Assembly (NCBI GenBank): GCA_964199315.1
Contig: OZ116707.1
Location: 62,001 to 126,000 of the forward strand
DNA: 64,000 nucleotides
Origin: Orbicella franksi
Lineage: Eukaryota
Direction of reading: 5' to 3'
The position numbers were made by a program, and so were the translations under genes. Each line of letters begins with the position of its first letter. The stretch's first letter is position 1. Shown one piece after another: positions 5,061-27,203 of the stretch. The notes under the pieces were generated by a model. It searched no databases. It was not told the DNA's origin and worked only from the letters and a program-made list of their open reading frames with translations.

Positions 5061-5065
5061 TTATT

Positions 5066-7446
5066 AAACTAATTCCACCGAATAGCTCTTTTGTTCCCAT
5101 TGTTTATTGTAGTCTTGCATTCAAAAAGTTAAACATGCCACTTCCTACCATGGATATCTCATCAACAAAAATTGTCTTGAGTTTCTTGAGTTGTGCCCTA
5201 ATGGTATTTAGTCTGTCGCTGTCCAGTGCACAATACTCAAAACCTCTATTTGCAGGTATCTTAAAAGCAGAATGTAATGTATTGCCTTTAATTTTAAAAG
5301 CTGCTTTACCAGTAGGAGCTGCTTTTACAACTTTCACATCATCTGGATTTTCCCCTGCAATACTATTCAGATATCTTATCAATGCTTCATACAATGCATT
5401 GGTGACTTTACTTTTGCCAACTCCAGCACCTCCGCTTAAGAACAATCTAAGAGGGTCATCCCTAGTTTTTATTGAATGTAACACATGATAAATATGTTGT
5501 CTCTGTTTTCATTCGAAGAGTGGACAAGTGCATAATAATTATCATCAGACATCCGCTTTATAAAAAGTTCCTCCTCATCATTACTTCTAGGGAAGATTCC
5601 GATATCAAGTAAATAATTCACTAGGCTTCTCCTTAACAGCACAGTCCTGCTTACTGATATGCTTTGCATTTGGAGCAACAGTGTCAAAGTTGTCATATTC
5701 AGTATTATTCATATCTTCCATTGCTTTATCTAGTATTTCTGAATGGTATTCATGTTGACGCCTATTGCTGATAACTTTATCCTTAACCTGTTCAAATCAT
5801 TCTTGGTAAGTCTAACATTCTTTCATTAAGTCAGTAGTTTCATTTTGCTACGGTGTATAAAGCATAAGCTGTTCTCGAAAATCGTTTTCTGGATCCTTAT
5901 CTTTATTGTACCTAACAGATCGTGTGATTTTAGGCTCCTTTTGTTTTACTAGTTTCATTCCTCTTTAAGTTTGTATTCATGTAGCTCACATTGACACTCA
6001 GTGACATTAATACTAATAGGGTCATTATCAGTATTGTCATAAAAGCTTGTTTCTGGTAAGAAGTCATCAAGACCTGTGACTGATGACCCATTTCCACTCC
6101 AATCAGCCTGTTCATCTTTAACATAGTTATACCATGCAACAAAAGTTAGCTAAACACAACTTTTCTAACTGTTTTGGTCTCCTTTGATAATGCTTAATTA
6201 TGTTGTCAGATTCTATGTAAGGTGAACTGTCAGGCAATTCCTTAAACTTATCCAGTTTCTTTAACAAAAATGTCCTGTAATCTGGAGGTGATGAGCTAAT
6301 AAAATGAAAATCACGGAAACATCTTCTAATGGGCATTTGTAAAACAAGATAAACAGCTTCTTGGGCACTGATTTCAACTGCATTTAAAAATTTGTTTCCA
6401 ATGTGCCTCACTCTATTTGTAATATCTTTATTACCAGATTGGGCTTCTTCAGATGCCTTTTCTAGAAGCCTGCTCATACCTCTCTGTCCTTTTGTAATGT
6501 AAGAGAGTATGTTTGTAGCAGATACATAAGGATCTAATACATATTGAATGTCCATGTTTGCTTGCCAGGCTTTGAGTAAAACATTGTTATAATTGTTTAT
6601 CCTTATTTTGGTTGGTGCCCTTTTCAAACATAACGTTGCCCTCTTTAGGGTGTGTCTTATAGCTAAGAAGTAACTTTCTTCAGTCAATTGTAAGTTGTTA
6701 AGAAAACCTTCAAATGTTATATCTTCATCATAGTTCATGTTGTCAAGAACTTCTTTTATCTTTTCATTTGCAGTTCTTTTAACTTATAGAAGATGTTTGG
6801 TACAGACATTGCAGCTCTTCTATCCTGGCATCTTAGCTCCCACTTGCAAATTGTACTGTATGATACAGGAAACTTTCTTTCATTGTTGACAGGTCTACGT
6901 TTTCCACAGAATATTGTGGGAAATGATAAATATTCAGAATCTTTGTCCATAAATATTCCTAATGGTCTTTTCCCTTCTCCTGGGGCAAAAGAAATTATTG
7001 TCTACATTTTCTACTACATCTGGTTTCTGTAATAGTGTATCTGTGACCCTGGTGGGCGTTCATCAACTTCACACCAATCATTGCTATCTTCTTTTTCACA
7101 GCCTGGATTTTCATCATCTGCATTGGCAATACTATTTTGACAATCTTGTGTTTTATCCTCTGGAACAATTTTATCTGTTTGTGTATGTAACTCATTATTA
7201 CTTGGAGTGTCAGAGTTTTCAACAAATTCACTCCAGTCTTCATGGACACTAGATTGCAAACTTATGTTATCTAACGAAGCATTTTGTACCTCTATACCTT
7301 CTCTCTTGAATAAATCACTTGTGTCTACAAGACATTTGCTGCATCTAATACTTTCTTAGGTCTAATATTTTGAAACTGGTACTGATGCTTATAGCTCAGA
7401 CGCCTTTCAAGTTTTATTGGAATGGTTTGTGATTCATTGATGGTCC
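5066..7446 (-). mobile_element. Helentron/Helitron RepHel, 3' part (post-DUF6570 segment, Rep flanks, PIF1 helicase start); decayed and internally deleted
   Basis: TINESQTIPIKLERRLSYKHQYQFQNIRPKKVLDAA; SEYLSFPTIFCG; NAVEISAQEAVYLVLQMP; Walker A SGGAGVGKS; APTGKAA; Walker B VDEISMVG. No HUH core is visible between 6756 and 6738. Confidence 0.88.
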
Positions 7447-7448
7447 TT

Positions 7449-7830
7449 CCCGTACAAAAAATTTATAGTTTGACATGGTGAGAATCTGGCTTGAATCTGG
7501 CCATAATGTCATTTTTGCGGTGTGAGTTGAACGAGACAAAGCGAGACACCAGATTTGTCCCGCTACAGTAGTTGACTGAGACATTTGACTCGCTATGTTC
7601 TGAGCGATAATATGGCCAGAATTTAGCGTGATCGAGCGAGTCTGATTTCACATTGTTTACGATGATTAACGTGACATTCATCTGGCGGTATTATGACCGG
7701 GAATGGAACGATACATTGACATGATGGTTTAAAATTATTTACGAGCCCCTGTATTCTGAGACCATGACTTTTGTCATGCTCGCATATCGGCGATAATATG
7801 GCTGGCTTTGAGCGTGTCCCAAACACAACA
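7449..7830. repeat. Left subterminal repeat region of the EnSpm element
   Basis: GAATCTGGC twice, CGAGACAAAGCGAGAC and GCGATAATAT motifs, mirrored at 24160-24523. Confidence 0.6.
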
Positions 7831-8615
7831 ATAAAATCAGTTCTGTTTGCAGAGCTGCCATTCGTGAAGATAATTGATTCGTAAAATTAACTTACGTGAA
7901 ATAGAATAATCATTTTGGAGGAGAATCTCGCAGAGCCCAAATAAAATTATTTTCGTCATTATATTAACCTAATTGAATCCAGTGTTTTTGTTTTTTTGTT
8001 ACATTAGATTTCAATATTACATTTTGCATATATTTGTGCGACTGGAGGAAGTTCGTGGAAAAGATAAACATGATCTCTTTATCACATACAGACATACAAT
8101 AAGCATAGTTTATTTCTGTTTCTGTATTTGCAATGCCAGCACACCGCAGTTATATCAAGTGCTGCGATGATATTCGAAAAAGCAACGGTGAAATAAAACA
8201 TTTCAATGTTGAACCTAAATTAAACGTAAACGTAGCACGGACGTGAAAGAATTTGAGAAATTTTATCTTACGACTCTTCATTTACCGTGCAAATGTAATA
8301 ACACAAAGGCGGTATACGATGTGCAATTTTACAAACAAGAAAGAACTTGTTGCAAATACCTGCGATTGCCAGAGACATTAAAACCAGCGCACAGTTCTGC
8401 GACAGTTGGGGAACAACAAACAGCATAAGAAGGCATTGAGAAGTAATCTATATGCAATAAGGCCCCATTAAGTAGGCGATCTCATAGGTTGTTGATGTAT
8501 TACTGTCATCACGGCCGCTACAAAGAAAACAACTTGTGCTTTAGATCAAGACAAATTCACGCCTGGCTAACCTTTCCTGAAAGTGCTTTCGACAAATACT
8601 TTTCCATTTTAGTTT

Positions 8616-10756
8616 TCAATCACGCTCTTTCTTATTAGGAAATTCGCACACGTAGGCCATGGAGTCCTCTTGTCTTCCTTCCACTGCTACGTTCAATGAA
8701 ATGTATAAACAGTTTGTGTAAATGCCTTGGAGATTAAGCACAACTATCTTCTCAAGAGAAAAATGTGTGACTCGAGTGATATGTACCTTTGGATTGTAGT
8801 TGTTGCACGAAATTGGGTGAGCTATGGCAAGAAAAGTGGGCTCTTTCACAGAACTCGGCTCATATTTGATGCAGAACTTCACCATTGCAAACACCCATGT
8901 GTTGTTCACGCGATACTTAACAACCGCGCAATTTCTTTTGCGCAGACGCTTACACGGCAGGCCGCAAATTATGGGCAACAAAGTCGTTATTTCTAGTCTA
9001 TTGAATGCCCAAAATCGTTCTATGGGGCAGGAAAACCCAAGATATTTCTCCAGGGCATTCATTTCCGCAATTCCTAAACACACCTGATATGCTGCACTTA
9101 AGACATACATATTTGAAAGGATTTCAGTCCTAAATTTAGATTTTCTAGCGTGGTTCAAGTCTTCATAAAGTAGATCAATTTCAGATCCTTTAGAGATACA
9201 CTTCTCACGAACTTCGGGTAGTTTCTGGGTTATAGATACGGCAGAGATTATTTGGCTGTCAATGAACTGTGTTCCGTGGATAAGCTTTAAGAGAAATCCA
9301 TTTTTGTCTTCAAATGCAAAACAGCTGTGTGTGTAAGTGGTCCAAGGTCTCTGACATCGTCCACTAAATGCAGTAACTGGTGAATGTTTAAGGGGTAGAA
9401 ACGTGGTTGATATAAGTTTGAAAAGGACTTACAAAAGCCATCAAGGAGTCTGTCAGCTTCTTGCAAATCTGCTTCAGAAATTGATTCTTGTAAAAGAATA
9501 AAAATGGCGTTGACGAACAATGTGTAGTGGGAGAAATAAGTGTCAGGTAAAAGGCCATATAACGTAGGGAACCCGTAAAACAGAAGAAATGAACGTAACT
9601 CGCTAGCTTTCCAATACTTTAAGTGTTTGGAAACAGACCGTGGAAGTCGCTTTACTTCAAAGGTTGGTGAAATCTGATTTAGCCTCTCATCGATGTTCTC
9701 CACTTTGGAGAATATACTAAAGTGTTCCTTTGAAAAGGCAGGACTAAACCACAAAGTCAGAAGTAATTTCTGGACACCAAGAAGAACTCCATGCATGTAG
9801 TCAATGCCCATGCCTCGCACTAAGTCAAAGTGCTGTAGTAAAGAAAGCCGCGATGGCCCTTTTACTCCATTCACAACATATCAATTTAAACCCTGTTTTT
9901 GGCGCCTGGCGGCTTCAAATCCGTTGTCTTTTACATTTTCTGAAGCTCTAATTGGCCCTTTAGGATTATCTTCTTGATAGGGAAATGTTCTGGAGTGACC
10001 ACGAATACCTGTCTTAACAGTTTGGCCTGGTTGTAACCATTTCCAGCAGCCATTTTCACCGTTATATTGCATACCATTGCACAGTAAGCAACAAGCTGGA
10101 AGGTCACAAGTGCAGGCAAGCAAAATTCCTCTGCAAAGGAAGTTTCCTCTCTCCGGTGAGTTAACGTAAACACCCTTTTCAAGTGCTGCAAAAGAGTGTG
10201 AGTGTGGTTTGAGGAAAGTTCATTGTTATCAATAAAATCGATTGGGAAATGCGGTTGGGAAGGTTTGTGACGGAAATCTTCTGATTAGAACTTTGAGTTG
10301 TCTCCGTGGTGTCTGATGGTCTCAGATCCTCTTAACGGAATGGTGGACTCAGCAGTGTATCCTGTGCTGAAAGCGGCCTCTTGTTGCACGCCTAATTCCT
10401 CGGAGGCCAATTCACAGGGCTGGATCGTGCGTGGCAAACTTGGCAAGGAAAGGGGAATGGTAACATCTGTGAATAAATATTCGTCCTCAGTTGTCCTTTG
10501 GCGCTTTGAACATTTTTCGTTTCTAGGAACATTTGACATGTTCTGTTCGGTGCTACAAAGCATTGCTCACACAGACCAATCTCGACTCACTGTACTGACT
10601 GAGAACAACTACGGAGCAATGATTTCAGTGTAACAGTATCACACCCTTGATGAGATATTTGTAGTTTGAAGTGATGACCCAGGGTCAAGCTTTTGGCTTC
10701 TTTGAGGCATGTCACCACCAGATATCAATGTTTCTTCAGCCAATGGTATAGTCCAT
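8616..10756 (-). pseudogene. EnSpm/CACTA-type transposase; frameshifted and apparently internally deleted near 10125
   Basis: CDLPA..LLCNGMQYNGENGC, GIDYMHGVLLGV, RLPRSV...WKASELRSFLLFY, HQLLHLVDDVRDLGPL-(Y)THSCFAFEDKNG. The ATG at 10756 is tentative. Confidence 0.85.
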
Positions 10757-10944
10757 AATGGCTGTCACTTGGCGTGCCTATCAACTTCTGAAGTAATGAG
10801 AGGCCCTGATTGGCTGCCGTTTTGAAAGCTCATTTCAATCGGTTTTGCGAACTGTTCGAGTAGGAGTTTTGGCACAAATTGTGACCGTTTGGGTTGTTTA
10901 GCCTCCTTTTTCCTATTTTTGGAGCTTTTCCACTGTCTGAGGTA
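10757..10944. promoter_or_regulatory. Putative bidirectional promoter between transposase and BEN gene
   Basis: About 190-bp gap between divergent putative ATGs; contains CTGATTGGCTG (reverse CCAAT box) near 10807. Confidence 0.35.
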
Positions 10945-12336
10945 ATGGCCGAGATTTTTTATGCCTGTGCATATTTTGCTTGCAACAAGACAGTCAGTGT
11001 TGTACCGAAGTCTAAGTGCATACTACAGGGTGAGTTCAAGGAGCAAGAGAAAGTAGGAGTGAAATGGCGCATTCAGGGAAAGCAGCAAGTGTTTATTGGG
11101 ACTATCCTCCATGTGTGCCCAAAATGTAAGTAAACATATTAAGTAGAAATGCAAATCGCAAGTATATTTGAAGCTGCTTAACTATTGCTGCCTTTGTCCG
11201 ACTCTTAATTTTTCCCAAATTAATATTTTAAACCGTTGCTGATGGCGCACATTTCGGCTGATACCTGCACAGCTCCAGAATAGTTGCATACGCCTGCACT
11301 CTATTAATACTTCTTTTCAGACAATCGTTTTAATTATTACAAAGGCCAAAGTATCTTTGCCCCATTTCTTGCTTTTATGCAATTTAGTGCCACAAATATA
11401 TGTTGTTGTACTTGGATTTCCATTCACAAATAAGCGCGGGAAACCCCGTGTCAACATCTTTAAGATGCTATTCTCAAGTCAAAGTTCGTGTTCAGTGTTA
11501 AACAAACAATCTAAACACGAATGAAAACGTCTTGAAAATGTCACTCCCTTGCGTGGTTTTCAAAAAAAAAAATTTTTGTATTGGAATGTTCAGTTTCTTC
11601 AAGTTTGCGTGTTTATTGCGCTTGGCTGAAAAGAAAAGGCACGTGACCATTTGAATTTTGGCTGAGAGGAACTAGGATCTAAATACTTTTTCGGTGAAAT
11701 TGTTGATTATTAAAAGGAATGCCTTTCGGATATTTAGAAACTGGTACTAGGTCTGCATTAGATTAAATAATTACTTATTACTAGGAGCCTTTTTCATGAG
11801 ATTGTGAGCAGGTCTGATTTTTTCTTTCTTTTTCATTACCGGAGTGCAAACTTGCCTGTCACGAATGTGGTGCCATGGAGGGAAATAGATTTGTTTCTAT
11901 GTTCTGCATTGTGTTACCTGTGAAAAAAAGTTTTGCATGAAGTATATCTAGTAGACTACACTTGTATATCTTTGGCTATAGCTGAGAAACATCTTCTGGA
12001 CAGCTATGCAGCACACTTGCACCTGTTCATCAGATCAGCCATAAGTCAAGGCCGTGACTATATCACCGCAGACTTGATTCAACAGTGGCGCAAAGAGAAG
12101 ACGCCTAGTGATGATGACTTTGACAACGAATCAAGCTCTCCTCCCAGGAAAGAGGTTCGTTTCCAAGGCGAAAGAAAGCAATGCAAACGACTCACTGAGA
12201 AGAAGTAATAAAGACGAGACACAGCAAAAGAAGAGCATTGCTGCATCCTCTATGTTGGCTTCACAGGAAATCATTACAGTTACACAATACAACGATGTTT
12301 TCCCCGTCATAAGTGCTCCACGCAACGATCACCCAC

Positions 12337-12750
12337 AGCAACAGCAACAGTTCGAGCAGCAGCGACAACAACAGCAAACACAGCAACAGCAACAGCAACA
12401 ACTTCAGCAGCAGCGTCAACAACAGCAAACGCAGCAGCAGCAACAGCAACAACTTCAACAGCAGCGACAACAACAGCCACAGCTTCAGCAACAGCGACAA
12501 CAGCAAATGCAGTCGTGGCAACAACTTCAGCAACAGCAACAGCAACTGCAGCAGCGGCAGCAACAGCAACAACTTCAGCAGCAGCGACAACAGCAACCCC
12601 AACAGCAAATGCAGCAGCAACAAACGCAGCAACTGCATAGTCAGCATCAACACACACCGGAACAGCAACACCGCAACCAGCGCATGTCGCAACAGCAATG
12701 TCTTCAGAGGCAGCAACAAAAACTGCCAGAACAGCAGAATCAGCAGCGAC
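12337..12750 (+). repeat. CAG/CAA-rich repeat encoding a polyQ tract
   Basis: Recurring CAACTTCAGCAGCAGCGACAACAACAG-type units in ORF 12108-12917. Confidence 0.95.
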
Positions 12751-13529
12751 AGAAACAAAAACAACCTGCAACCCAAGCAAGTATATCAACAGCAGCCTCA
12801 GCAACGCCAACCTGTGCCGCAGCCGAATTGTACTCAAGAATGAATTGTTCTACAGCACTGTACCCCACCAGAGGTAAACAATCAACTAACAAATCTGTTA
12901 CCACTAACAAGTCTTGATCAACTCATGGAAGAGCAACAACAGAGGCCACAAGGTATGGGAATCCAGTGAGTGCGGTGAATCTAGACGAGGCTAATGATTT
13001 GGGAACCACGAGATCGGCTTTGAAGTCAGCCATGATAACTCTGGCAGAGTATGAAGAAGACTTCCACGACGATCCTGAAGATGGACCTTCTCTTGATGAC
13101 TCTGGTATTACTGAAGATATCACTGGAATCGACGTAGAAAGTGAAAATTGCGAAGTTGATCCACATATTCAATTAGCTGCCTTGAAAAAGAAAATTACAG
13201 AAATGGAAAAAGAGAATGAGGAGCTAAAGGTTCAGCTGAAGGCTTTCCAATATGCTGGTATGTTTTTCTACTAAAAATATGTAGGTTAAGTAGTGAAGCC
13301 TGCCCTCAGCCTCTTACCCCTAACCCACACATCAGAAAGAAGAAACCCACACACGTAATCTGCATAGCACAAAGTATAAAATTTAATCCAATAATCCGAT
13401 AAGATAATCCGATTACGTATGCATGAAAGACAAATGACTTTCTGAAGCTACTTACCCTTAAAGTTAAGGCCATTTCTCTCAAATGCTTTGAAAATTGTGA
13501 ATAAAAGACCTTCCAATTATTGAGTTCCC

Positions 13530-16500
13530 GACTCTGGTCAAGATGGCGGGTCGGTCGAGTTTTGCGAGCTCTCTTACATTTCATTTAATAATATGTTTAC
13601 TCCTTGCTCAAGTCTCGAAGTTTTACCCTCAAGGAACCCAACACAGTAACCTTCAAATTCTTATGGCTACAAAAGACGCAAATGAAGTGAAGCTCAACGT
13701 TTATCCAGCAAAGTCAACTCCGAGATCCCTCGCAACCAGCATGGCGAACGCAACGAAGACCATGAAGCTGATTCGCTTTATACGCCTTCTAAATACAGCC
13801 ATGATTGCAAATGTCATTTTATTATCGAATGATATACAACTAAATCCAGGCCCTGGGCCTATTCAACATCGTGAAATGAGGAGCTTGCGTCTATTCCATT
13901 TGAATATCTGCAGCCTAAGAAATAAGGTGGACGAGCTTCGACTGTTCTGCGAAACACACAAACCTCATGTGCTATCGATAAACGAAACATGGTTGGATGA
14001 GTCATTTTCAGACGAAGAAATTTGGCTTCCAGGCTTCAATTTACTGAGGAAAGATAGAAATTGCCATGGGGGTGGATTAGCAGTTTACATCGCTGAACAC
14101 CTGAGCTTCAATCGACTGGACGAAGCAAATCCCGAACTAATGTGTGCAGATTTAGAAGCAATTTGGTTTGAATTGTCTCAACCGAAATCAAAGAAGCTGT
14201 TGGTTGGCTCTATTTACAGATCACCAAATTCGGATATTTCCGCTTTTAATTCGAGTTTGGAGAAGACCCTAAACAACCTTAAGAGTATCGGTGCGGAAAT
14301 GGTACTCATGGGGGACTTAAATGTTGATTTCTCCAAATCAACAACATCTTATAAACACCTTCAACAGATAACCAAGTCATTTTGCCTAAAACAGTTAATC
14401 AAAGGATTTACAAGAGTAACGCAGCACACCAGAACTTTAATTGATTTATTTTTCACCTCAAGGCCAGAACTTTATTTCGCCGGTGTTGTACCAGTTGGTT
14501 TTTCTGACCATAGTGCTATTTTTGGGGTAAGAAAGCTACACAGGATGAAACGCCCTCCACCAAAAATTATTGAAACGAGAAATTATAAACATTATAATCC
14601 AGCATTGTTCCGTGATGACCTAAAACACATCCCATGGGAAATCATCGAACTCGAAGAAACACCAGAGGGTAGTTGGAACGCCTTTAAAGACCTTTTTCTA
14701 ACAGCTGCTGACAAACACGCACCCATTGTTACGCGTCGCGCCCATGGATATTCAGTGCCGTGGTTAACAAGCGATCTAAAGAAACTTATGCAAGAGCATG
14801 ATTACCACCACAAAAAGGCCCTAAGTACAAACAAAGAACAACATTGGAGCAATTATAAGCGGTTACGCAACACCATAAACACAAGAATGCGTAAAGAAAA
14901 AATTGACTATTATGCAAATCAACTGGCGGATGAAAAAGACCCAAAGGTGATGTGGCGAACTTTGCATAAAATCGTCCCCCAAAAAATCAAATCAGTACCT
15001 TCAAGCAGTGATGGTCTTACAGCCTCAAGATTCAATGGCTTTTTTACATCGATCGCAAACTCTCTGAGCAGCCATTTTGAACGTTGTACTCTGCCAAAAG
15101 TTATGTCAACTAGAGTTGAACAAGACTTTGTCCTTGAAGAGGTGTCATCCGGATTTGTTCAAAAAGAACTGCTCAAAATGAAGTCAACTAAAGCTACTGG
15201 CCTCGATGGAATTCCTGCTCGATTACTGAAAGATGCAGCAAATGAAATATCTAGACCAGTCGCCTACCTCATAAATTTAACAATTTCTACCTGTATGATA
15301 CCATCTGAATGGAAAACTGCGAAGGTAACTCCAATATACAAATCGGGCGATAAGAGCGACCCAAATAATTATCGTTCGATTTCAGTCCTTCCGTTGATTT
15401 CTAAAGTAATGGAACGAGCAATTCAATCACAGCTTGTAGCATTTCTAATCAGAAACCATTCCTTGTCAGTGCATCAATCAGGATTCCGTAAGAAACACTC
15501 CACTGAAACAGCCACTGTACACTTTGTTGATCACATTTTAGAACAAATAGATAAACAGATGATTACCGGGTCTATTTTTATAGACCTAAAAAAAGCGTTC
15601 GATCTCGTTGACCACCTCTGCCTGCTCCACAAACTAGAACATTATGGAATTAGAGGGAAAAGTTTGAAATGGTTCGAAGACTACCTTACAGCTCGATCCC
15701 AGAAGGTCAAATACAACCAAGACGAATCATCGAGCTTAACTATTAGTTATGGGGTTCCCCAAGGATCCATACTGGGCCCGATACTATTTGTGATATACAT
15801 CAATGATCTCCCGCAAAGTCTACTGAAGTCACAAATAGGCATGTATGCCGACGATACTGTTATATATTTCTCTGATTCCTGTCCAGATATCATCAAGCAG
15901 GTTCTTCAAAACGATCTTACCAATGTTGAGAAATGGTTAGTAAGCAACAGGCTGATACTCAATCAGAGTAAAACTAAATGGATGCTGTTTGGAACTAGGC
16001 AAAAACTAGAACACTGTCCAGACTATAAAATAGAGCTTCACGGGAAAAACATTGACAGAGTATCAAGCTTCTGTTATTTAGGGGTAACACTAGATGAGAA
16101 TCTTTCATGGAACGAACATGTAGAATTGATTTGTAAGAGAGTAAGAAAACGTCTCGGCCTGCTGTCACGCATACGACCCTACCTTACTCTAAAAGCTGCT
16201 AAATGCGTGTATAATTGTTTAGTTCAGCCGATTTTTGATTACACTAACACGGTATGGGATGGGCTGTCAATCGGTTGCAGTAACAGCTTGCAACGTCTGC
16301 AAAACAGAGCAGCACGCATTATAGAAAGGAGGGCAACAACCGAAGGATCTTTTAAAATGTTAGGGTGGGTGGATTTGGAAACCCAAAGAAAAGCCCACAA
16401 ATGCATTTTAGTTTTTAAATGTTTAAATAATTTAGCTCCTCCATATTTGTCGGATTATTTTATTAGAAATTGCAACGTTCATTCTTACAACACGAGGGAA

Positions 16501-16803
16501 AGGAACGACATGCACTTGCCAAAACCCAAGTTAACGCTAGGGAAAAGGACTTTCAGATACTCTGGTGCGCTTCATTTTAATAATTTACCCACTACAATAA
16601 AAGAAGCAACATCGCTCCCCATTTTTAAAAATCTTCTTAGACTTTATTTTAGAGAGTAGTTTTTATTTTTAATTTTTTATAATTGTAAACGTTAATCTCT
16701 ATGCATAGAAATTTAATGTAGTCTTAATTTACGCAGGGCCCCTTTTGATACCAGCCAAGTGCTGATTGGGCCACCCTGCCTAAATAAAGTTGACCTTGAC
16801 CTT
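13530..16803 (+). mobile_element. L2-type LINE, single intact ORF, inside an intron of the BEN gene
   Basis: ORF starts in CAAGATGGCGG; 3' end AATAAAGTTGACCTTGACC (polyA signal plus short tandem tail). 5' boundary approximate; no TSD found. Confidence 0.9.
13543..16659 (+). CDS. LINE ORF2-type protein, 1038 aa: hydrophobic leader, 2A-like DIQLNPGP, AP endonuclease, reverse transcriptase
   Basis: SINETWL, MGDLNVD, FSDHSAI; IDLKKAFDLV, GVPQGSILGP, YADD; no stops. Confidence 0.95.
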   Translation: MAGRSSFASSLTFHLIICLLLAQVSKFYPQGTQHSNLQILMATKDANEVKLNVYPAKSTPRSLATSMANATKTMKLIRFIRLLNTAMIANVILLSNDIQLNPGPGPIQHREMRSLRLFHLNICSLRNKVDELRLFCETHKPHVLSINETWLDESFSDEEIWLPGFNLLRKDRNCHGGGLAVYIAEHLSFNRLDEANPELMCADLEAIWFELSQPKSKKLLVGSIYRSPNSDISAFNSSLEKTLNNLKSIGAEMVLMGDLNVDFSKSTTSYKHLQQITKSFCLKQLIKGFTRVTQHTRTLIDLFFTSRPELYFAGVVPVGFSDHSAIFGVRKLHRMKRPPPKIIETRNYKHYNPALFRDDLKHIPWEIIELEETPEGSWNAFKDLFLTAADKHAPIVTRRAHGYSVPWLTSDLKKLMQEHDYHHKKALSTNKEQHWSNYKRLRNTINTRMRKEKIDYYANQLADEKDPKVMWRTLHKIVPQKIKSVPSSSDGLTASRFNGFFTSIANSLSSHFERCTLPKVMSTRVEQDFVLEEVSSGFVQKELLKMKSTKATGLDGIPARLLKDAANEISRPVAYLINLTISTCMIPSEWKTAKVTPIYKSGDKSDPNNYRSISVLPLISKVMERAIQSQLVAFLIRNHSLSVHQSGFRKKHSTETATVHFVDHILEQIDKQMITGSIFIDLKKAFDLVDHLCLLHKLEHYGIRGKSLKWFEDYLTARSQKVKYNQDESSSLTISYGVPQGSILGPILFVIYINDLPQSLLKSQIGMYADDTVIYFSDSCPDIIKQVLQNDLTNVEKWLVSNRLILNQSKTKWMLFGTRQKLEHCPDYKIELHGKNIDRVSSFCYLGVTLDENLSWNEHVELICKRVRKRLGLLSRIRPYLTLKAAKCVYNCLVQPIFDYTNTVWDGLSIGCSNSLQRLQNRAARIIERRATTEGSFKMLGWVDLETQRKAHKCILVFKCLNNLAPPYLSDYFIRNCNVHSYNTRERNDMHLPKPKLTLGKRTFRYSGALHFNNLPTTIKEATSLPIFKNLLRLYFRE

Positions 16804-17654
16804 TCTGTTAACTTTTAGTACTATCTACTGAAGTCCTCGGCTACTTTAAAAAGCTTGTTGGGCTTTTTGAAGGGGAAGACATTCAGGCCCTGCCAGAAGT
16901 CGCTCCCTGTACTCAGTCCTATGTTATAAAGGCCAATTTTAATCCATCTGAGGTTAGAGTTTGTCATTGTTAACAACTGGTAGCAAATCTGTGTATTTTT
17001 TCTGAGTAAGGTGCTGTCTGAAAGCACGCTGTTGACATCAGTTACAGTTTCGCTTGCTTTGATAGCCAACGGTGAATGTGAGTTCACAGATTGCCCGCAG
17101 AAGCTTTAAACTACACTTACGTGGTTACATATCAACTAAAAGTATTAAAAAAATCAAAGGAGAATAAAAGCTATAACCTATCCGTCAGTTGTTATAATAT
17201 CAATGTTTCCTTTATTCTCTGCACGTTTTATGCGGAAATTGGATGGTTTCTGTGACAAAAACAGCAATTATAAGGAACGTTTCAGCTTGTTCAGTTATGA
17301 ATTTTATTGATTTCCCTAAGCTATCTCCAAGTACATTTTCCCAGTGTTAAACAAGTAATGGAACTGATTACGATTCTGTCTCCCTAGTTATGACAACGTC
17401 AAACGATTGAATGAGGGGATTCGGATGACTTATGAAGGAGATCTACTGGGGGTGCCAAATGAAATGCTTTTCTCTGAATTTTTATTTCTTATTAATTTAC
17501 GTGAGGGAGAAATGCGCTTGCTCAAGGGATACGATGTCTTCGTCCCGGGCAGCAAATTAAGAATCCTCATCAACGAGGCCAGATTGAAAGGCCCTCTTCA
17601 CTTGCTACAAAAACTGATTCCGTTAATTTTTTCAAGTGAAGAACTTGCCCAGTC

Positions 17655-20600
17655 TGTGACATGTTGCGTGACATATCGTTACATCGTTACGTCATTTAGT
17701 TCCCGTATGTTAGATGGCGTCAGTTCCATGTGGACTTCACTTGAAATAAAGCCTGTGCTTGTGTTTTCTTGCCGGACTTCTGTTGTCCCGTCTTTCTTGA
17801 GTTTAGCTGATTGATACATGGTGGCAGCGGTTGAGAATCTGCTCAGAACCGCTGCAAGTCATGCCTGCAACTGGAGTTGAAGCTGACGCCGTTTCTGCAC
17901 CAACCTTGAGCGCTGCTCAACCGAATCGCCTGCCATTACCACATGTAAAACCTCCTGCTCCACTCAACCTTGTGGACTGTTCGCCGAAAAAGTGGAAATT
18001 ATGGAAACAAACCTGGATTAACTACGCGGTTGTAGCGAAGATTACCAGCCAAGATGCTCAATATCAAAAAGCCCTTTTTCTCTGTACCATCGGTCAAGGT
18101 GCATTGGAGATCTTCAACGCCTTTTGGTACAACACCGGCGAAGACCCCGAAAAGGTCGATACCATAATAGCCAAGTTTGAGGAGTACTTCACGGGTGAAG
18201 TCAACGAGACGTATGAACGCTTCAAGTTCAACCAAAGAAATCAAGAAGTCGGCGAAAGCTTCGATGCATACCTGATCGCACTACGAAACATGGCTGAAAC
18301 ATGTAACTTTTGCACTTGCCCTCAAATGACTAATTCTCTTCTTCAAGACCGTATTGTTCTCAGCATCAGAAATGGCGATGCCAGAAAAAGGCTCCTTCAA
18401 GAACCAAAGCTGGATTTAACGAGATGTATTGATATTTGCCACACATCTGAAAGTGCCACAACTCAACTGCAGGCAATTGGTGCGAGTGAAAAAGTTGAGG
18501 AAGTCCACTGGGTAAACCAATCACGTAGAACGAATGGCAAACGGAGTGACCCCCCTGAACCATCATCTGACAGGAAAACCACGCAGTCACGAAAGCTCAA
18601 GTGCAAATTCTGCTTGCAGACTCATGTTCTGAAAAAAGAATTGTGTCCTGCATGGGGTAAACGGTGCAATGCATGCGGGAAAATGAATCACTGGAAGGGC
18701 TCTGTGGTCTGTGAGACAAAAGGAAAGGTGCACCTAGTGAATCAGGCCTGTGACTCCTCTGACTCCGACTCGGATGTGGCCTCTGTAAAGACCCTTAATG
18801 CTTTTGTCAATGGTGTTGCATCTAGGAAGGATAAGCCAATCTATTGTGAAATGAACATTAACTCCAGCCCAGTCAAACTGCAAATAGACTGTGGAGCTAC
18901 TGTCAGCATCATTCCCAGAAATTGCATAGGCAACAGTGAAATTCAGCCATCCAACATTTCCCTCGAAATGTGGAACAAAGCAAAAATGAAAGCACTTGGT
19001 ACCTGTAAACTCCTCCTAGAGAACCCCAAAACCTCCAAGAAGTACATGGTGAAGTTTGTTGTTGTTGAAGCTGAACTAACCCCACTGCTGAGTCGCAAGG
19101 CAGCTGAGAAGATGAAGCTGATCACAGTCAACTATGATAAGTTTGAAAGTGTTAATGGAGTAGTTGAAGGCCAGCAAGACGTCTTAAAAGCTTTTCCTGA
19201 TGTATTCAATGGCGACATTGGCACCTTATCTGGCTCTGTACGTCTGACCATCAAGCCCGATGTAGAGCCGGTACTTCGTCCACCGAAAAGGCTGCCTGTT
19301 GAGCTGCGAGACCAGGTTAAGCAGGAGCTTGACAGACTGGTCGGGGTAGGAGTTCTCGCTCCCGTAGATGAACCCACCGACTGGGTAAATCAGATGGCAA
19401 TTGCAACCAAAAAGGATGGAAGTCTTCGGATCTGCATAGATCCACGATCCCTTAACCTCGCGTTAAAGCGGGAACACTACCAGCTTCCTGTACTGGATGA
19501 CATCCTCCCTGACCTTGCAAAGGCGAAAGTTTTCAGCAAAGTTGATCTGAGTCATGGTTATTGGCACTGTACCTTGGAAGAAGAGTCCAGTCTGCTTACC
19601 ACTTTCTCTACCCCATTCGGGAGGTACAGGTGGAGACGTCTTCCCTTTGGACTCTCTGTTAGCTCTGAGATCTTCCAAAAACGACTCCATCAAGCCCTGG
19701 AAGGACTGGTGGGTGTTGCCTGTATAGCTGATGACATATTGATCTATGGTGTTGGAGACACCATTGAGGATGCCACACAGGACCATTACAGAAACCTCAC
19801 ATCACTCCTCCAGCGCTGCGAAGAGAAATCCATCCGCCTCAACAAGGAGAAAGTGACCCTGAGAGTGAAACAACTGGATTTCATGGGGCACCAACTCACT
19901 ACAGAGGGTCTGAAACCAGATCCAAGTAAGGTAGAAGCTATCCTAAAGCTGCAAACACCAAAGACCAAGGAGGACATTGAAAGACTTAACGGAACTGTTA
20001 ATTATCTTGCAAAATTCCTTCCAAAGCTTTCCCAAGTAACGGAACCACTCAGAAGACTTACACAAAAGGGAGTCGAATGGTACTGGGGCGATGCTGAAGA
20101 CAAAGCTTTCAATGAAGTGAAACAACTAGTCACCCAGGCTCCAATCCTTGCCTACTACAGTCCTGACAAAGAGCTTGTTATACAGTGTGATGCCAGCAGC
20201 CTGGGAATTGGTGCCGCACTTATGCAAGAAGGTCGACCACTGGCATATGCTAGCAGAGCACTTACAGATCCTGAGACCCGTTATGCCACCATAGAAAAGG
20301 AGATGCTTGCTATTGTCTTTGCACTGGAGAAGTGGCACCACTTTACCTTTGGTCGCCGGGTAGTTGTCAGATCGGACCACAAGCCACTTGAAGCCATCAC
20401 CAAAAAACCGCTTGACAGGGCACCGAAACGTCTACAAGGCATGTTGCTCAGAAGTCTGGCCTATGACATAGAAGTGCAGTATTCTCCGGGTCACACACAG
20501 CACTTGGCAGACATGATGAGCCGATCATACCTACCAGCTGATGGCCAAGAAACCTGCAATGAATTTGAAGTTGTCAATGCCGTCCAATTCCTGCCCATTG

Positions 20601-22446
20601 GACAAGGGAAGTTACAGAAGTTTCGAGTGGAGACTGAACAAGACGACACCTTACAAGCCCTGAAGAGCACCATACTGAAAGGCTGGCCTGAGGACAAGTC
20701 CAACGTTCCTTCCCAACTGGTCCCCTACTACAGCATGAGAGATGAGCTTAGCATTTATGATGGGCTTGTTTTCAAAGGTGAGCGCCTTGTTGTACCCCAG
20801 GGACTTAGGGCCGAAGTTAAGAGAGACATACATGCATCCCATGCTGGTGTTGAAGGCTGTCTCAGGAGGGCACGGGAAAGTGTGTATTGGCCTGGCATGA
20901 ACTCTGAACTCAGACACTGGATTTCAACCTGCGAGCCCTGTAGGCTGTTTGAAATCTCGCATGGCAAAGAGACCCTCATGTCCCATGAAGTGCCACAGAG
21001 GCCATGGGAGAAAGTAGCTGTTGATCTATTCTCCCTGAACCAGACAGACTACCTGGTGACAGTGGATTACTATAGTGGCTATTGGGAACTGGACAAGCTG
21101 CACCATGTAGATGCTGAGACTGGTGAAGAAACTCAAGGCTCATTTTGCCAGACATGGCAGTCCATGTCAGCTTGTAAGTGACAATGGCGCTCAATTTACA
21201 GCTGCAGAATTCAAGAGAATGACAAAGACCTGGGACATTGAGCATAGTGTTACATCCCCCTACAACAGCAAAGCCAATGGCAAGGTAGAGGCAGCTGTCA
21301 AATCTGCCAAACGACTGCTTCGCAAGACTGCCAAAGCTGGAGACGATTTCTACTTGGGGCTCCTTGCTGAACGCAACACCCCATCACAAGGCATTGGAAG
21401 CAGTCCAGTCCAGAGGCTCATGAATAGAAGAACAAGAACTCTACTGCCTACAACTAACACCCTGTTGGAGCCAAGGACACTCAACTCGGCTCACGAGAGA
21501 GAGAAATTGAAAGAAGTCCAGCAAAGGCAAGCCCGGTATTACAACACCAACGCCCGAGATCTACCCCCTCTGAGTGAGGGTGACACTGTGCGAATGAAGC
21601 CGTTTGTACTGGGAAAAAAGGAGTGGAAGAAGGGAGTTGTCGTGGAAAGGCTCGATGAGAGGTCATATGAAGTGGAGACAGGAGATGGGACGTCTTACAG
21701 ACGAAACAGAGTTCATCTGAAGAGAACCAATGAGCTGCCTCCTGAGGTTACTACTAATTTACCACCACAAGTCTCAAACACTCCTGACACAACCGGTGAC
21801 TCAACTTGTCAAGGAGAGTCAAGCAGCACCCTGGATACCGGTACTTCCCTTGTTGAACTCAACCGAGAGATAGCTGAGTTGGACTGTGGTGTGATAACAA
21901 GGACCCGCTCAGGACGGATTGTAAAAAGACCATCCTATCTCGCAGATTACAATACTTGACTGTCATGCTTCTTGGCCTCAGTTACTGAACCTTGAGTACT
22001 GAACACTGAACCTAACTTTAGCATCGCATGTTTGATTAGTTTGTTGAACACTTGTTATGGTTCACTATTATTGAACATTGACATTTGAATACTAAAGAGA
22101 CTTAATAGAACTTGCTGTGTGGCTACAAGGCCAGGCCCATGATCATTGGACTTTGAAGGGGTTATAGACATTGAACACTTGCCAATGAACATTTATTATG
22201 CTAGATTTGCATGGCTCATTATTTTCTTATTTTATTTTATTTCATATTTCATTTTTACTTGCTTTTTCTATATTGGGGGAGATGTGACATGTTGCGTGAC
22301 ATATCGTTACATCGTTACGTCATTTAGTTCCCGTATGTTAGATGGCGTCAGTTCCATGTGGACTTCACTTGAAATAAAGCCTGTGCTTGTGTTTTCTTGC
22401 CGGACTTCTGTTGTCCCGTCTTTCTTGAGTTTAGCTGATTGATACA
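17655..22446 (+). mobile_element. Ty3/Gypsy LTR retrotransposon 1, full length
   Basis: 164-bp LTRs 17655-17818 and 22283-22446 (TG...CA, identical by eye); TSD CAGTC; PBS TGGTGGCAGCGGT (tRNA-Leu type); PPT GGGGGAGA. Confidence 0.97.
17861..21959 (+). CDS. Gag-pol polyprotein (gag, protease, RT, RNase H, integrase); one frameshift near 21110-21125
   Basis: CPAWGKRCNACGKMNHW, QIDCGATVS, CIADDILI, CDASSLG, DHKPL, HASHAG...C..C, VDYYS, SDNGAQF, NGKVEAAVK. Confidence 0.93.
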
Positions 22447-24525
22447 CAGTCATGTGGGCAAGGCATTGGTTCTTCCTCTACCATCAAGCTTCAGGAAGAA
22501 GGGGACATCAAGCAACCACTGGATAATGCAAAAGTCCAAGTCTTTAAAGGTAGGACCTCTAATCTGTGATTGTTTTGTTTGAGATGACGTGCCTTAAACG
22601 TGGAAAATGAGAAGTAGACCAATGTATTTTTTTGGAAGGAGAGGTTTGCAGTGTTTTAGTTTAAACTAAGAAAAGTTAATACAATCGAACCACTGAATCC
22701 TCCCGCTCAACTACTGGTAAGGAAACAGACCTAGAAAGTTCGTGATATCTTGTTTTTTTTTGTCCATTATAGGAAAACAGCTCAATACAGAATTAATTTG
22801 TTTAGGTAGAACAACGAAGATTCGCCTGCATTCAGTACGCAGTGAATCACGTGACTTTACTACAGACGTACTTGCGTCTTCAAGTGAGACTCTTCTCAAG
22901 TTTTCAGCAGCTCTTTTTAATATCTCTTCGATTTCAATTTGTTCTTCAGAGTACTTGTTGTCATTTTGCATGGCCAATGGCAAAGAAAGCCCAGCGCCTA
23001 AACAAGTCTTCACTCAACAGATCAGCTACTCAAGACACAAGATGAAGAGGGCAAGAGGGAAACTCGAGAACCTAAATATTGAAGTTAACACAATACAGGA
23101 CCTTCAGTAAAGGTGCAAGTTTTTCTATGACTCTTTGAATAAGTATCACGTCAACTTTGAATAAGTAAGAAGTTATACAGTTAAGAATCTTTTAAGGATT
23201 ATTTGTAGAAATAGCACGCGTCTGCGAGTGATAAGTTAGTTGACCATGTGTTACGAGGTTGCAGAACACATAAATTTTTGCTCGAATCGCTGACGGAGTA
23301 CATAGCTTGATTTAGCACCTTTTGTGATACGGTCCTGTGTTGGGTTGTTTAGCCGGTCGACCAAAACTGGAGCTACGATGTTATTTTGCTACGCTCTACA
23401 AGAAAGTGAACAATGTAACACGCTTGACTTGATGTTCGAAAGATATAACACATATATAAACCGTTCTGTTTCTTGTAGCTAGGTTCTTTCTAGTGCTTTC
23501 TCCCTGAAATGAGACACTTCAAAAGCAATTGCTTCTGTCCGTTGTTAAAGTTCAAAAGTACTCTTGGTGGGTAGTTTTGTAGTTTTTAGGGCTTACGCAA
23601 ATCCCAAATTATCTTACTTGTGTGACATACTTCAACTGTGTTTACAGTAGGGTGGACCGTGCACGAAGTCTGGCTATCCGGATTTCATTTCTAAATTCAT
23701 TAACCGAGAAAATGTTCAGTGGAGAGTTTATGCGAACTATCGATGAAGGAGAAAACACTGAATGGAATATCGAATGAGACCAAAGACAAGAAGGCACCCA
23801 GAAACCGTATGTAAATACAAAATGCTTAATTATATGCATATTTAACAAAATTTAGTTTTCCTACACACAAACGATTACATGCCATATTGTACTATGCCGG
23901 TTTGCATTCTTTCAATATTAATTAAGTAGCCAATGCTTTACAAGTATTCCTTTTGTTTAAATTCATGTACCTTTATAAAGAAAACTACTACGGTTTTCGT
24001 TTGACATGTTTTAAGATTGAATAAATATCATATTTCTGACTGCGAAGGCTGTACGTGATACTGGATCATTTTTGCATTGTGTGGAATGTGGCATTTTAAA
24101 CTGAGTTATGTCGATGTTTATTCTATATTTATATTTTATTCGATATTTAGCATTCATGTGGCTGTTCTTATTATTTTGCTGATGTTATTTGGCCATCCTA
24201 ATGTCACGGCGATACAAATGTCTCGCTCCAATCTCATTATATCGTCTTTTGTTTTCCAATCGCTTGCCAGTGGATTTATTGTCAGGAGTTATTTTATCGT
24301 TTATTGACGTGATTTTTTTATGGCTTGAAAATGGCCCGATTATCGCTAAGTCTGGTGATCCAAATGTCATGGCGATACACGTCTCGCTCAATTCTCGCTT
24401 GTTTTGTCTTGCTCATGTCAGCTAAATTATCGCCATGACTTGTCACATTCGAGTCTCACTGGTTAGCATCTTTTTTTTATGGCCTGAATCTGGCCCGTGT
24501 CTCGCCAAGGATTTTCGTACAGGCT

Positions 24526-27203
24526 GGCAGACAGTGAACAGTTGAATTTACATCAGTTGGTACATTGACAATGTTTCCATGAATTGACAACTGGGCACCT
24601 CTTGGTAGCTCACAAATTTGCATAAATGGAATACGAGGTGATATAAGCCGTTCTTCCAATGGTGTTAAATTTAACAAGTCAGGTTTTTTAGGAAAACTAA
24701 TTTTATTGGCTTTAGAGAGGCTGGGAAGCTTGCCTTTCTTTAGATTTGAGTCACAAGTTCTGCAAATCCATTCAATATTTTCTACACTTCTCACCCCACT
24801 GACACAAGACTCAACAAGATCTTGTGAACATGCCTTATACCTGTTAGCATTACATTTCAATGCTGAAGACTTATAGCACAACTGGTCACAGCAGGTACAT
24901 ATGTATTCTGGGCCACATTTAATGTTTTTGTGAAACAAATTTATCAAAGAAATAACACTGCTTTCATTTTTCTCTGTTTGTAACAACTGATCATTATTAG
25001 TTGATACATGTGATGACTTTTGAGCATTTTCAAATTGATTTTCATTGGCTGGTATAGTCATATTTAACTAATTCAATAGTTTGAATTTAGTGGTTCTCCT
25101 GACTTTAGTATTTCTGTTTACTTGCTCAATGTGTTCTGGGCTATCTGCTTTCCGTTTCCTAAAACTCTGTTTATCAATTTCTTTTCTATGTTCTGGATTT
25201 TTTGCTTTCTGTTTCTTAAAACTCTGTTTTTCAATTTCTTTTCTCTGTTCTGGATTCATTTCTTTACGTTTTCTGAAGGACTTTTAGTCAATTTCTCTGA
25301 CCTGTTCTGGATTCTTAACCTTTTGTCTTCTAGATGACTTTTTTGCAATTTCCTTTATGTGATCTGGGTTCTCAGCTTTCCGTTTCCTTTTAGACTTTTT
25401 GTCAATTTCTCTTCCGTGTTCTGGGTTGGTTATTTTCCTTTTAGTGACAGTTTGGTTCATTTTCTCCCTAAGTGTTTCAACATTGTTGTACCTTTGCACA
25501 GGATTTTAATTCTCTCTTTTTCTAAAATCTGCATTGGCTCTTCTCTTTTTCATGTATTCTTTCATGTAACCTCAATCAGCTCTGCGTTTTCATCTTTATC
25601 AATTATTTTTTTTCAACTACACTTTGATCACATGTTTTGTTGTTTGCTACCGGTCAATTTCTCTTTTTTACCGTAGAAACGTAATGAGTTTCACTTATGT
25701 GTCCAATGTAAATGTTTGTGCGTTCTCCTGTCACATTCACTGCTTGAACAACAGTGACAGGAGCAAAAGTTTCAAATGACTTGGCAATATGAATTGACAA
25801 ATTTAGACAATTGGCCACTACTTGAATTATGATTGCATCAGCCCATGTTCCCTGACATGACATATTGTTCAAATAGTCTTGCCAAGAATGATCAGTGTTA
25901 CTCTCTATGAACTGTTCAGGGTTCTCCAGTAAATACTGGACACCAAGGCTACATACATGAGAATGGTTATTAGGATTACCATAAAGTTGATGTGAAACAG
26001 CTTGAAAGAAGCAATCACCACCTCCTCCAACTTCAACTGCCATTCCATTTAATTCAGACAACCTAGTTTCCAATAATGAAACTGAATTGGTAATTGAGGA
26101 GTGATGTGCCACTAAATTACAAGTAGTGGTCGCGCTGCACTAATTTGATGGCCCCGGATTCTCTTCAACATCACCACTTAGAGATGACCCTGTGAGATAC
26201 ACAACAAGTTTCGACCCAACAGCATTTTAATTTCTTTAATGATCTCCCGTCACCACACATACAAAATAAGGGTGACTTCTTGTGCTTTAATGTTCTCAGC
26301 CACACAACACATAGGTACACATTTTGGCTGAGGGAGAACTTTTTTGACAGTAATAAAAATTTAGATCTGACTAACTGTTTACTGAAATAACAACAATTAC
26401 GTGCAGACAGGAAAGTTTTAGTTCAGATGAACTTGGAATGCTTCTTTTAAGGTGTGATTTCGCTGCATTTTGAAAAACTTTTGTTTTTTTTTGAACAGTT
26501 TGATGATTCTCCTATATGGAATTCTGGAAGGTTCTCTTTCATGTTTCCTTCTACAATGCAACCTCCATGTACTTGTACAAACGTCAACCGTGGTCCTTGA
26601 TATTCTGCTTTTCATAATTTCATGACTTGGTGAAACACAATATTCGACTGAATTATCAGTTGGCACTTTCACCAGAGGTTCCTGGTTGTCAAATTTGGTT
26701 TTCTCTTTGGCACGTTGGTAAGTTACCGCTGAGGTGTTGCACTCGCATGTCTGGTTGGCAGATCTGGAGAACTGATCAAATTTGGCATTTACCTGCTCAT
26801 GTTTGGCTTTGATTTGCTCGTATTTGGCGATGATTTGTGTGTACTTTACTTTGATTTGTTTGTATTTGGCTTTCTCGCTTTTCATAGTTATGGCATAACT
26901 CCAGTGAGCAGGGAGATTGACGTACTGTATACACGCCCGGTACTTGTCATCGCCTTTAGAGTAACCCTGGCTAGACAACGGTTTTACTGATTTTGCTGTC
27001 CCTGAATATATCCGGGACTGATTACAAGCATCTCCACTCATTGAGGCGCCCATTGCATAGTAGCCCTCCATATAATTTTTAAAATGGCGAACGCAAACAT
27101 TTGTACCCAACTTGTTAGGTGACTTTACGAGCACTTCCCGAGGACAACCGAAGTATGATCGATCTATTAATTGCATTTTCTTTAAAACAAAAAGATTAAC
27201 CAT
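24526..27203 (-). mobile_element. Helentron 5' part: leader ORF, 2A motif, OTU protease, basic repeats, DUF6570-like Cys-rich domain
   Basis: GDVEENPGP (26149-26175); OTU GGGDCFF...WAD...ETHYVST (25654-26112); GPEYICTCCDQL, WICRTC, LEERLISPRIPFMQI..LPRG.Q..IHGNIVNVP. Terminus not found. Confidence 0.85.
25120..25470 (-). repeat. About 57-bp (19-aa) coding tandem repeat, roughly 6-7 copies
   Basis: NPEHRKEIDKQSFRKRKA-type units in ORFs 25068-25259 and 25284-25499. Confidence 0.8.

Follow-up and report, generated by a model that had tools for sequence, protein, structure and literature searches.

Can a rolling-circle DNA transposon divide its translation product by ribosome skipping? The question is raised by a 64,000-nucleotide stretch of the Orbicella franksi genome, hereafter the window (assembly GCA_964199315.1, contig OZ116707.1, positions 62,001-126,000; 390 N). 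Its minus strand encodes the peptide GDVEENPGP, identical to the C-terminal nine residues of the 2A peptides T2A and P2A, ahead of an OTU-type deubiquitinase (DUB) domain in a damaged copy of a Helentron. Judged from the sequence comparisons described below, a 2A preceding the DUB is under strong purifying selection in a large, partly intact lineage of cnidarian Helentrons. Its conservation makes it likely that StopGo translation at the 2A frees a basic, mostly disordered leader from a transposase composed of the DUB, the fused Rep and helicase domains (RepHel) and an APE domain.

The motif and the element that carries it

Direct translation of the minus strand reads CTA AGT GGT GAT GTT GAA GAG AAT CCG GGG CCA TCA AAT TAG as L S G D V E E N P G P S N stop and places GDVEENPGP at 26175-26149, where the original prediction had located it. 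The 2A core (SLSGDVEENPGP) covers positions 26149-26184 of the minus strand, with the predicted skipped bond between Gly (26154-26152) and Pro (26151-26149). The motif had been claimed to share its frame with the OTU open reading frame (ORF; 25654-26112, minus strand), and this holds, as 26175 and 26112 are 63 nucleotides apart, a multiple of three. The two lesions noticed earlier, a TAG three codons past the motif and an indel directly upstream, are likewise present. Two codons separate the premature TAG (26142-26140) from the final Pro, and two 94%-identical sister copies carry CAA (Gln) in its place. Alignment with the same copies reveals a 2-bp deletion in a TCTCTC run (26185/26184, minus strand), immediately 5' of the SLS codons, which breaks the frame and shifts the upstream leader to a different one.

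OTU, Rep, PIF1 helicase and APE domains in this order define Helentrons (PMC4067079; PMC9741609), and the proposed identity of the element as such a rolling-circle transposon is borne out by the OTU, DUF6570, Helitron_like_N, PIF1 and Exo_endo_phos domains found in genome copies and database relatives. In the window, the OTU cysteine-protease domain (PF02338, E 2.4e-13) lies in the frame of the 2A, and an ORF at 24477-25061 (minus strand) contains the start of DUF6570 (PF20209, E 2.1e-12), the domain preceding Rep in Helitron-like proteins. The HUH Rep domain (PF14214, Helitron_like_N, E 7.6e-27) was detected in the 1280-residue ORF of genome locus L040 and is also present in the database proteins P0286 and P0249. 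The PIF1 helicase is fused to Rep (PF05970; E 1.9e-30 in L040 and 1e-29 in locus L042), and a C-terminal APE domain (PF03372, Exo_endo_phos) was found in L041 (E 5.8e-07) and L042 (E 3.6e-08) as well as in P0286 and P0249. The window copy itself is dead: it carries the frameshift, the stop codon and a 17-kb insertion, and it is truncated, with neither the helicase C-terminus nor the APE domain detected by blastn against its sister copy.

Conservation in the genome and in other cnidarians

A DNA search of the genome with window positions 25650-26420 gave 40 scored matches, and 15 loci including the window cover the 2A site. All 15, whose nucleotide identity to the window is 73-94% and which represent five or more subfamilies, encode SLSGD[V/I/M/A]E[E/S/L]NPGP in the frame of the OTU domain and are mostly free of stop codons; one copy reads SLSEDVESNPGP at this site. 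Across the copies the S, L, G, D, V, E, N, P, G and P positions show synonymous codon variation (TCT/TCA, CTA/TTG/CTT/CTG, GGT/GGA, GAT/GAC, GTT/GTG, GAA/GAG, AAT/AAC, CCG/CCA/CCT, GGG/GGT and CCA/CCT). As codons differ synonymously at nearly every position, it is the peptide and not the DNA that is under selection. Fourteen loci on eight chromosomes (L005-L018) form a repeat family of 90-92% identity; they contain only the C-terminal half of the OTU domain (query positions 480-766), are thus uninformative on the 2A, and may represent a non-autonomous or internally deleted Helentron derivative.

Genome-wide, 237 sites encode DxExNPGP, compared to 4 in the reversed control. A translated search with a 474-residue leader-2A-OTU ORF from locus L039 returned 96 matches, eight of which have open frames of 1746-2569 residues, and motif sites within or adjoining leader-OTU matches make up approximately 30 of the first 100 listed. 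The frame was checked for four of the eight long open frames, those on C1 and C3. The offset of the motif from the start of the match is a multiple of three at C3:19945913 (2456 residues), C1:33357029 and C3:24173131 (2414 residues each) and C1:6170076 (1837 residues); hence, the motif is in frame in apparently intact elements. Conservation of the motif in frame in intact copies, on which the original prediction depended, is therefore found in all subfamilies read, at no fewer than four loci with long frames and in full-length cnidarian proteins. Approximately 70 of the first 100 listed DxExNPGP sites fall outside the scored leader-OTU matches, and one exact 23-mer (GACATTGAATTAAACCCAGGTCC, encoding DIELNPGP) occurs 22 times among these 100 sites.

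A word-based protein search with the 474-residue query gave 234 proteins, of which 120 were listed. The named hosts are the stony corals Oculina patagonica and Acropora millepora, the sea anemone Nematostella vectensis and the octocoral Paramuricea clavata. The pooled set comprised 92 fetched proteins in which the OTU catalytic motif was found by a simple pattern. In 81 of them, NPGP is located no more than 70 residues upstream of the OTU Cys motif; five deviate from NPGP by one residue (NLGP twice, NPGR, NPDP and NSGP), and three start too near the OTU domain for the presence of a 2A to be judged. P+1 and the catalytic Cys are separated by 26-88 residues, with a median of 39. Among 84 distinct peptides, D-7 is found in 100%, G-8 in 94%, V/I-6 in 95%, E-5 in 96%, S-9 in 88%, L-10 in 86% and L/I-12 in 93%, with V, I or L at -17; position -4 is variable and conservation drops at once past P+1. 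By these residue frequencies, the profile corresponds to the 2A consensus of viruses, also in having a single variable position. In an alignment of 29 sequences with identities down to 28%, the G, D, E, N, P, G and P columns and the OTU Cys are invariant, and the His is nearly so.

A second protein search was started from the RepHel ORF and thus had no bias towards the 2A. It retrieved full-length Helentron proteins of corals, bivalves, a sea cucumber and a snail. In nine of the 120 listed proteins a 2A lies in the N-terminal region, followed each time by a deubiquitinase as the next domain. Absence of the 2A from other gene models means little, as many of them begin at or past the DUB. The order leader, 2A, OTU, DUF6570, Helitron_like_N, PIF1 and Exo_endo_phos is seen in the full-length proteins P0286 and P0249, and in P0286 (2379 residues) the leader spans residues 1-344, OTU 373-464, DUF6570 708-834, Rep 1042-1181, PIF1 1670-1894 and APE 2174-2369. 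In these two and in the full-length proteins P0261 and P0275, the 2A is embedded in one continuous ORF that is coding on both sides.

The motif also precedes a second, unrelated type of DUB. The Helentron proteins P0177 (JGI metagenome 3300024343) and P0179 (Logan SRR26668462) have short leaders unrelated to that of the OTU type, and their 2A sequences (SDIELNPGP and CGDVEENPGP) are located 12-20 residues ahead of a Herpes_teg_N domain, i.e. a viral tegument-like deubiquitinase (VTD), instead of an OTU. The leader-2A-VTD part of P0179, used in a word search, matched P0179 alone. In most other VTD-type Helentron proteins, which are leaderless, the DUB begins at about residue 9. As the VTD is normally N-terminal, skipping would return it to a place near the N-terminus, with an extra upstream protein still encoded.

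The leader and the proposed skipping

Upstream of the 2A, the frame is open for 230-330 codons in the best copies. The last ~130 residues of this leader contain a basic motif (R-[D/E]-R-E-P-S-R-I), K/R-rich residues and then V-P-x-S-S, and show invariant columns (R.RE.SR and P.S) in the 29-sequence alignment. Between intact pairs, the ratio of nonsynonymous to synonymous substitution rates (dN/dS) is ~0.25-0.5 for the leader and 0.2-0.5 for the OTU part; pairs with frameshifted copies (families B and C, leader part) were noisy and were excluded. By these ratios and the invariant residues, the leader is coding; it may start at a conserved MDVVC. It has no Pfam match and no usable match in the ESM Atlas. 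AlphaFold2, run on the alignment, predicts disorder for residues 1-196, weak helices of low confidence for 197-246 and a confident OTU fold for 333-474. A further low-confidence helix (283-307, pLDDT ~40) is predicted to end just before the 2A core and to be followed by a loop; active 2As have a helix ending near position -10 (10.64898/2026.06.17.732966). The closest solved relatives of the OTU domain of a sister copy are human OTUD3, OTUD1 and OTUD5, and a nairovirus OTU is similar too.

Active relatives encode, in a single ORF of ~2100-2570 codons, a leader of ~60-400 residues followed by 2A, OTU, DUF6570, HUH Rep, PIF1 and APE. With the nascent sequence L-S-G-D-[V/I]-E-x-N-P-G in the exit tunnel, the ribosome would free the leader, leave the Gly-Pro bond unmade and restart translation at Pro. 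One mRNA would then yield two proteins, a leader ending with NPG and a transposase beginning with Pro some 26-45 residues ahead of the OTU Cys. The selected function may be the release of the leader or the placement of the DUB near a free N-terminus.

Several observations weigh against this mechanism. A peptide from a related coral Helentron-type protein, A. millepora XP_044182051.1, was scored as 'falloff' and not as clean skipping in a 2026 screen that used 20-residue inserts in human cells (10.64898/2026.06.17.732966). The window subfamily (RVISLSGD...) has fewer Leu residues at -13 to -10 than the 2As of highest activity. The leader has no fixed start codon, and its N-terminal parts are made up of short tandem repeats differing from family to family. 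The in-frame status of the intact genome copies rests on coordinates and reported open frames and not on base-by-base sequence. Lastly, NPGP is missing in 3 of the 92 OTU proteins, and leader-OTU proteins lacking the motif exist, e.g. P0063 and P0134. The latter (2179 residues) has two tandem N-terminal OTU domains and no 2A.

The falloff score would also suit a 2A that functions mainly as a translational throttle, with stalling or fall-off at NPG/P keeping the amount of RepHel-APE low and the leader serving as a functionless spacer. Most 2A-like peptides of retrotransposons do lower protein abundance (10.64898/2026.06.17.732966), and the leader is repeat-rich and predicted to be disordered over residues 1-196. 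A mere spacer, however, would need neither the invariant residues of the leader nor a dN/dS below 1 across cnidarian orders, and a throttle gives no reason for the 2A always immediately preceding the DUB. We therefore consider this explanation unlikely. Still less probable is a motif kept in a one-chain protein for some role other than skipping, for instance as a linker, as a docking site or for recognition by a protease. Some canonical-looking 2A-like peptides were indeed non-skipping in the 2026 screen (10.64898/2026.06.17.732966), but here conservation is confined to the positions that define the 2A consensus, the freedom at -4 and the drop in conservation beyond P+1 agree with it as well, and the same motif stands ahead of a second DUB whose fold and leader are both unrelated.

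An origin of the motif by chance, or from a LINE fragment (non-LTR retrotransposon) that landed beside the Helentron OTU, has next to no probability. Such an origin could be considered because 2A-like peptides occur in cnidarian non-LTR retrotransposons (PMC3708506) and because LINE and LTR (long terminal repeat) elements are nested in the window copy. These retroelements are on the opposite strand and at least 1.6 kb away, though, and the homology to other Helentron copies runs unbroken across the motif from 28076 to 24525. The DxExNPGP pattern occurs once in the window against 0.01 occurrences expected from shuffled sequence, and the ORF with the motif has no reverse transcriptase (RT) domain. 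No RT domain was found in any of the Helentron copies or database proteins examined; the RT ORFs of the window belong to the nested elements on the other strand. With the unbroken homology and the median of 39 residues to the OTU Cys, a LINE origin, which would have refuted the original prediction, is excluded, and skipping that releases the leader is the explanation we favour.

It is conceivable, if rather doubtful, that StopGo and deubiquitination work as a pair. Pausing at the 2A would bring ubiquitin-dependent quality control to the stalled ribosome or the nascent chain, and the DUB, translated next, would remove the mark in cis and rescue synthesis of the transposase. This DUB would be OTU in cnidarian Helentrons, VTD in others and Josephin or OTU in some LINEs; the order of 2A and then DUB in unrelated elements would be a convergent module. 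A viral OTU relieved the protein loss seen where a stop codon comes directly after a 2A (10.64898/2026.06.17.732966). The same pairing of a 2A-like peptide with an N-terminal Josephin or OTU domain at the N-terminus of a transposon protein has been reported for LINE ORF2p; unlike Helentrons, these are retrotransposons, from algae and dinoflagellates (10.64898/2026.06.17.732966).

The Helentron motif shares with the viral 2As (T2A, P2A and F2A; picornaviruses and insect viruses) the core GD[V/I]ExNPG/P and a location between two functional parts of one ORF, and it may share a hydrophobic helical tract upstream. Its carrier, however, is a cellular DNA transposon and not an RNA virus, and the upstream tract Y-x-V-S-x-R-x-[LI]-x-L-S forms a family of its own. 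With the 2As of APE-type non-LTR retrotransposons (L1Tc, Ingi, STR, CR1 and Crack; PMC3708506), it has in common the occurrence in mobile elements of marine invertebrates, the N-terminal position in a long ORF from which a leader is split off, and the association with an APE-type endonuclease. Helentrons differ from these as class II elements without reverse transcriptase, in which the 2A precedes a deubiquitinase and the APE domain is far C-terminal. The LINE 2As of Nematostella are mutated, and two that were tested were inactive (PMC3708506), whereas the Nematostella Helentron 2A is canonical. Published Helentrons with N-terminal OTU or VTD, cnidarian hosts included, show the same order of DUB, Rep, PIF1 helicase and APE, with no mention of a 2A or of a leader upstream of the DUB (PMC4067079; PMC9741609). 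The OTU and papain-like proteases of nairoviruses and arteriviruses are likewise DUB-type proteases beside a polyprotein junction, but they cut after a ubiquitin-like GG tail, in contrast to the putative skipping signal of the Helentron junction, which has no GG site. L.GG was not found in the 70 residues preceding the OTU motif in any of the 92 fetched OTU-bearing proteins.

The original prediction held that 2A had not been described in Helitrons. This is correct for the text of all searchable papers, but one unremarked instance stands in a table of the 2026 preprint. Table S7 of this preprint (10.64898/2026.06.17.732966) lists A. millepora XP_044182051.1 with Foldseek matches to PIF1 helicase and VTD and with the 2A at 42-62, and does not name or discuss it as a Helitron; the protein is a Helentron-type protein. 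The exact Helentron peptides were not found in the accessible portion of the screen supplements, which holds similar, non-identical ones. The 2A contexts given in the preprint are LINE ORF1p and ORF2p, Ty3, NLR, RapGEF and ankyrin (10.64898/2026.06.17.732966). Odon et al. 2013 (PMC3708506) reported 2A solely in APE-type non-LTR retrotransposons. Recent surveys of 2A diversity (PMC12338488, PMC12846837 and 10.64898/2026.09.24.754024) mention neither Helitrons nor helicases. Literature searches found no paper joining 'Helitron' with '2A-like' or 'Helentron' with 'NPGP', and NPGP is absent from the top-ranked literature on Helitron, Helentron, DNA transposon, OTU or non-LTR. The string occurs in neither PMC9741609 nor PMC4067079, and 'skipping' does not occur in the former.

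So far, 2A/StopGo recoding has been known in RNA viruses, in retrotransposons and in a small number of host genes, and its strict conservation in Helentrons would extend it to class II elements. If skipping takes place, Helentrons produce at least two proteins per ORF, which alters their gene annotation; existing gene models often begin after the 2A or fuse both parts. A 2A fixed before two unrelated DUB folds ties ribosome stalling to DUB activity in a way that can be tested, and this link may explain why Helentrons carry DUBs, a question left open by Erven et al. 2022 (PMC9741609). The large natural series of cnidarian 2A variants could also serve transgenesis in corals and sea anemones.

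Further features of the window copy and related loci

The window copy belongs to family A. Its 5' end lies at approximately 28076 on the minus strand, where the match to a second copy, located on another chromosome, begins. Comparison of the 5' boundaries of these two copies shows that the homology starts after a T run; a 12-bp palindrome ~30 bases inside the end reads TGCGCATGCGCA in the second copy and has one mismatch in the window. The window has no 3' end of the element. According to blastn against the sister copy (C9, L035/L036), identity is 91% from 28076 to 24525; the match resumes at 7448 and fades by 5058. This remaining part (5058-7448, minus strand) is patchy and reaches into the PIF1 helicase region, as judged from the domain positions in L042. 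The interruption is a nested insertion of ~17 kb (7449-24524), delimited by blastn and Pfam, which contains on the plus strand an open non-LTR retrotransposon ORF with APE and RT domains (13543-16659, 1038 residues) and a Ty3/gypsy pol ORF (17831-21959, 1116 residues). Both look young and neither has a 2A motif.

The leader of the window copy is spread over two frames other than that of the 2A, all on the minus strand. An ORF remnant of 261 residues (26418-27203), out of frame with the 2A, contains the basic motif HEREPSRIPYRRIIK, which is invariant in the 29-sequence alignment, and a stretch of 21-nucleotide tandem repeats (26772-26873). The C-terminal part of the leader, including KHKKSPLFC, was located by tblastn in the third frame at 26225-26389.

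Downstream of the OTU domain, repeat analysis identified 57-nucleotide (19-residue) tandem repeats at 25132-25314 (minus strand). Many cnidarian Helentron proteins have a variable array of basic, K/E-rich repeats of ~19 residues (NPEKVKE-like) between OTU and DUF6570 (P0125-P0128 and P0241). In L039 (C3:15575500-15585499, minus strand), the 19-residue (57-nucleotide) repeat, similar to KRKAANPELVREINKQSFR, has grown to an array of more than 7 kb. Two frames are open across 2400-2950 codons in this 10-kb locus, and the translated search gives an open frame of 4554 residues there.

Four near-identical Helentron fragments on C11 (1692914, 1709181, 1842081 and 1858323) form two pairs, each with a spacing of ~16.2 kb, which suggests a segmental or tandem duplication containing the element. 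Elsewhere in the window, at 55839-58552 on the plus strand, an ORF with an integrase core (rve, E 1e-12) is directly followed by an ORF with an OTU domain (E 1.7e-07) and no 2A motif; this region looks like a Ginger1-type DNA transposon with an OTU of its own.

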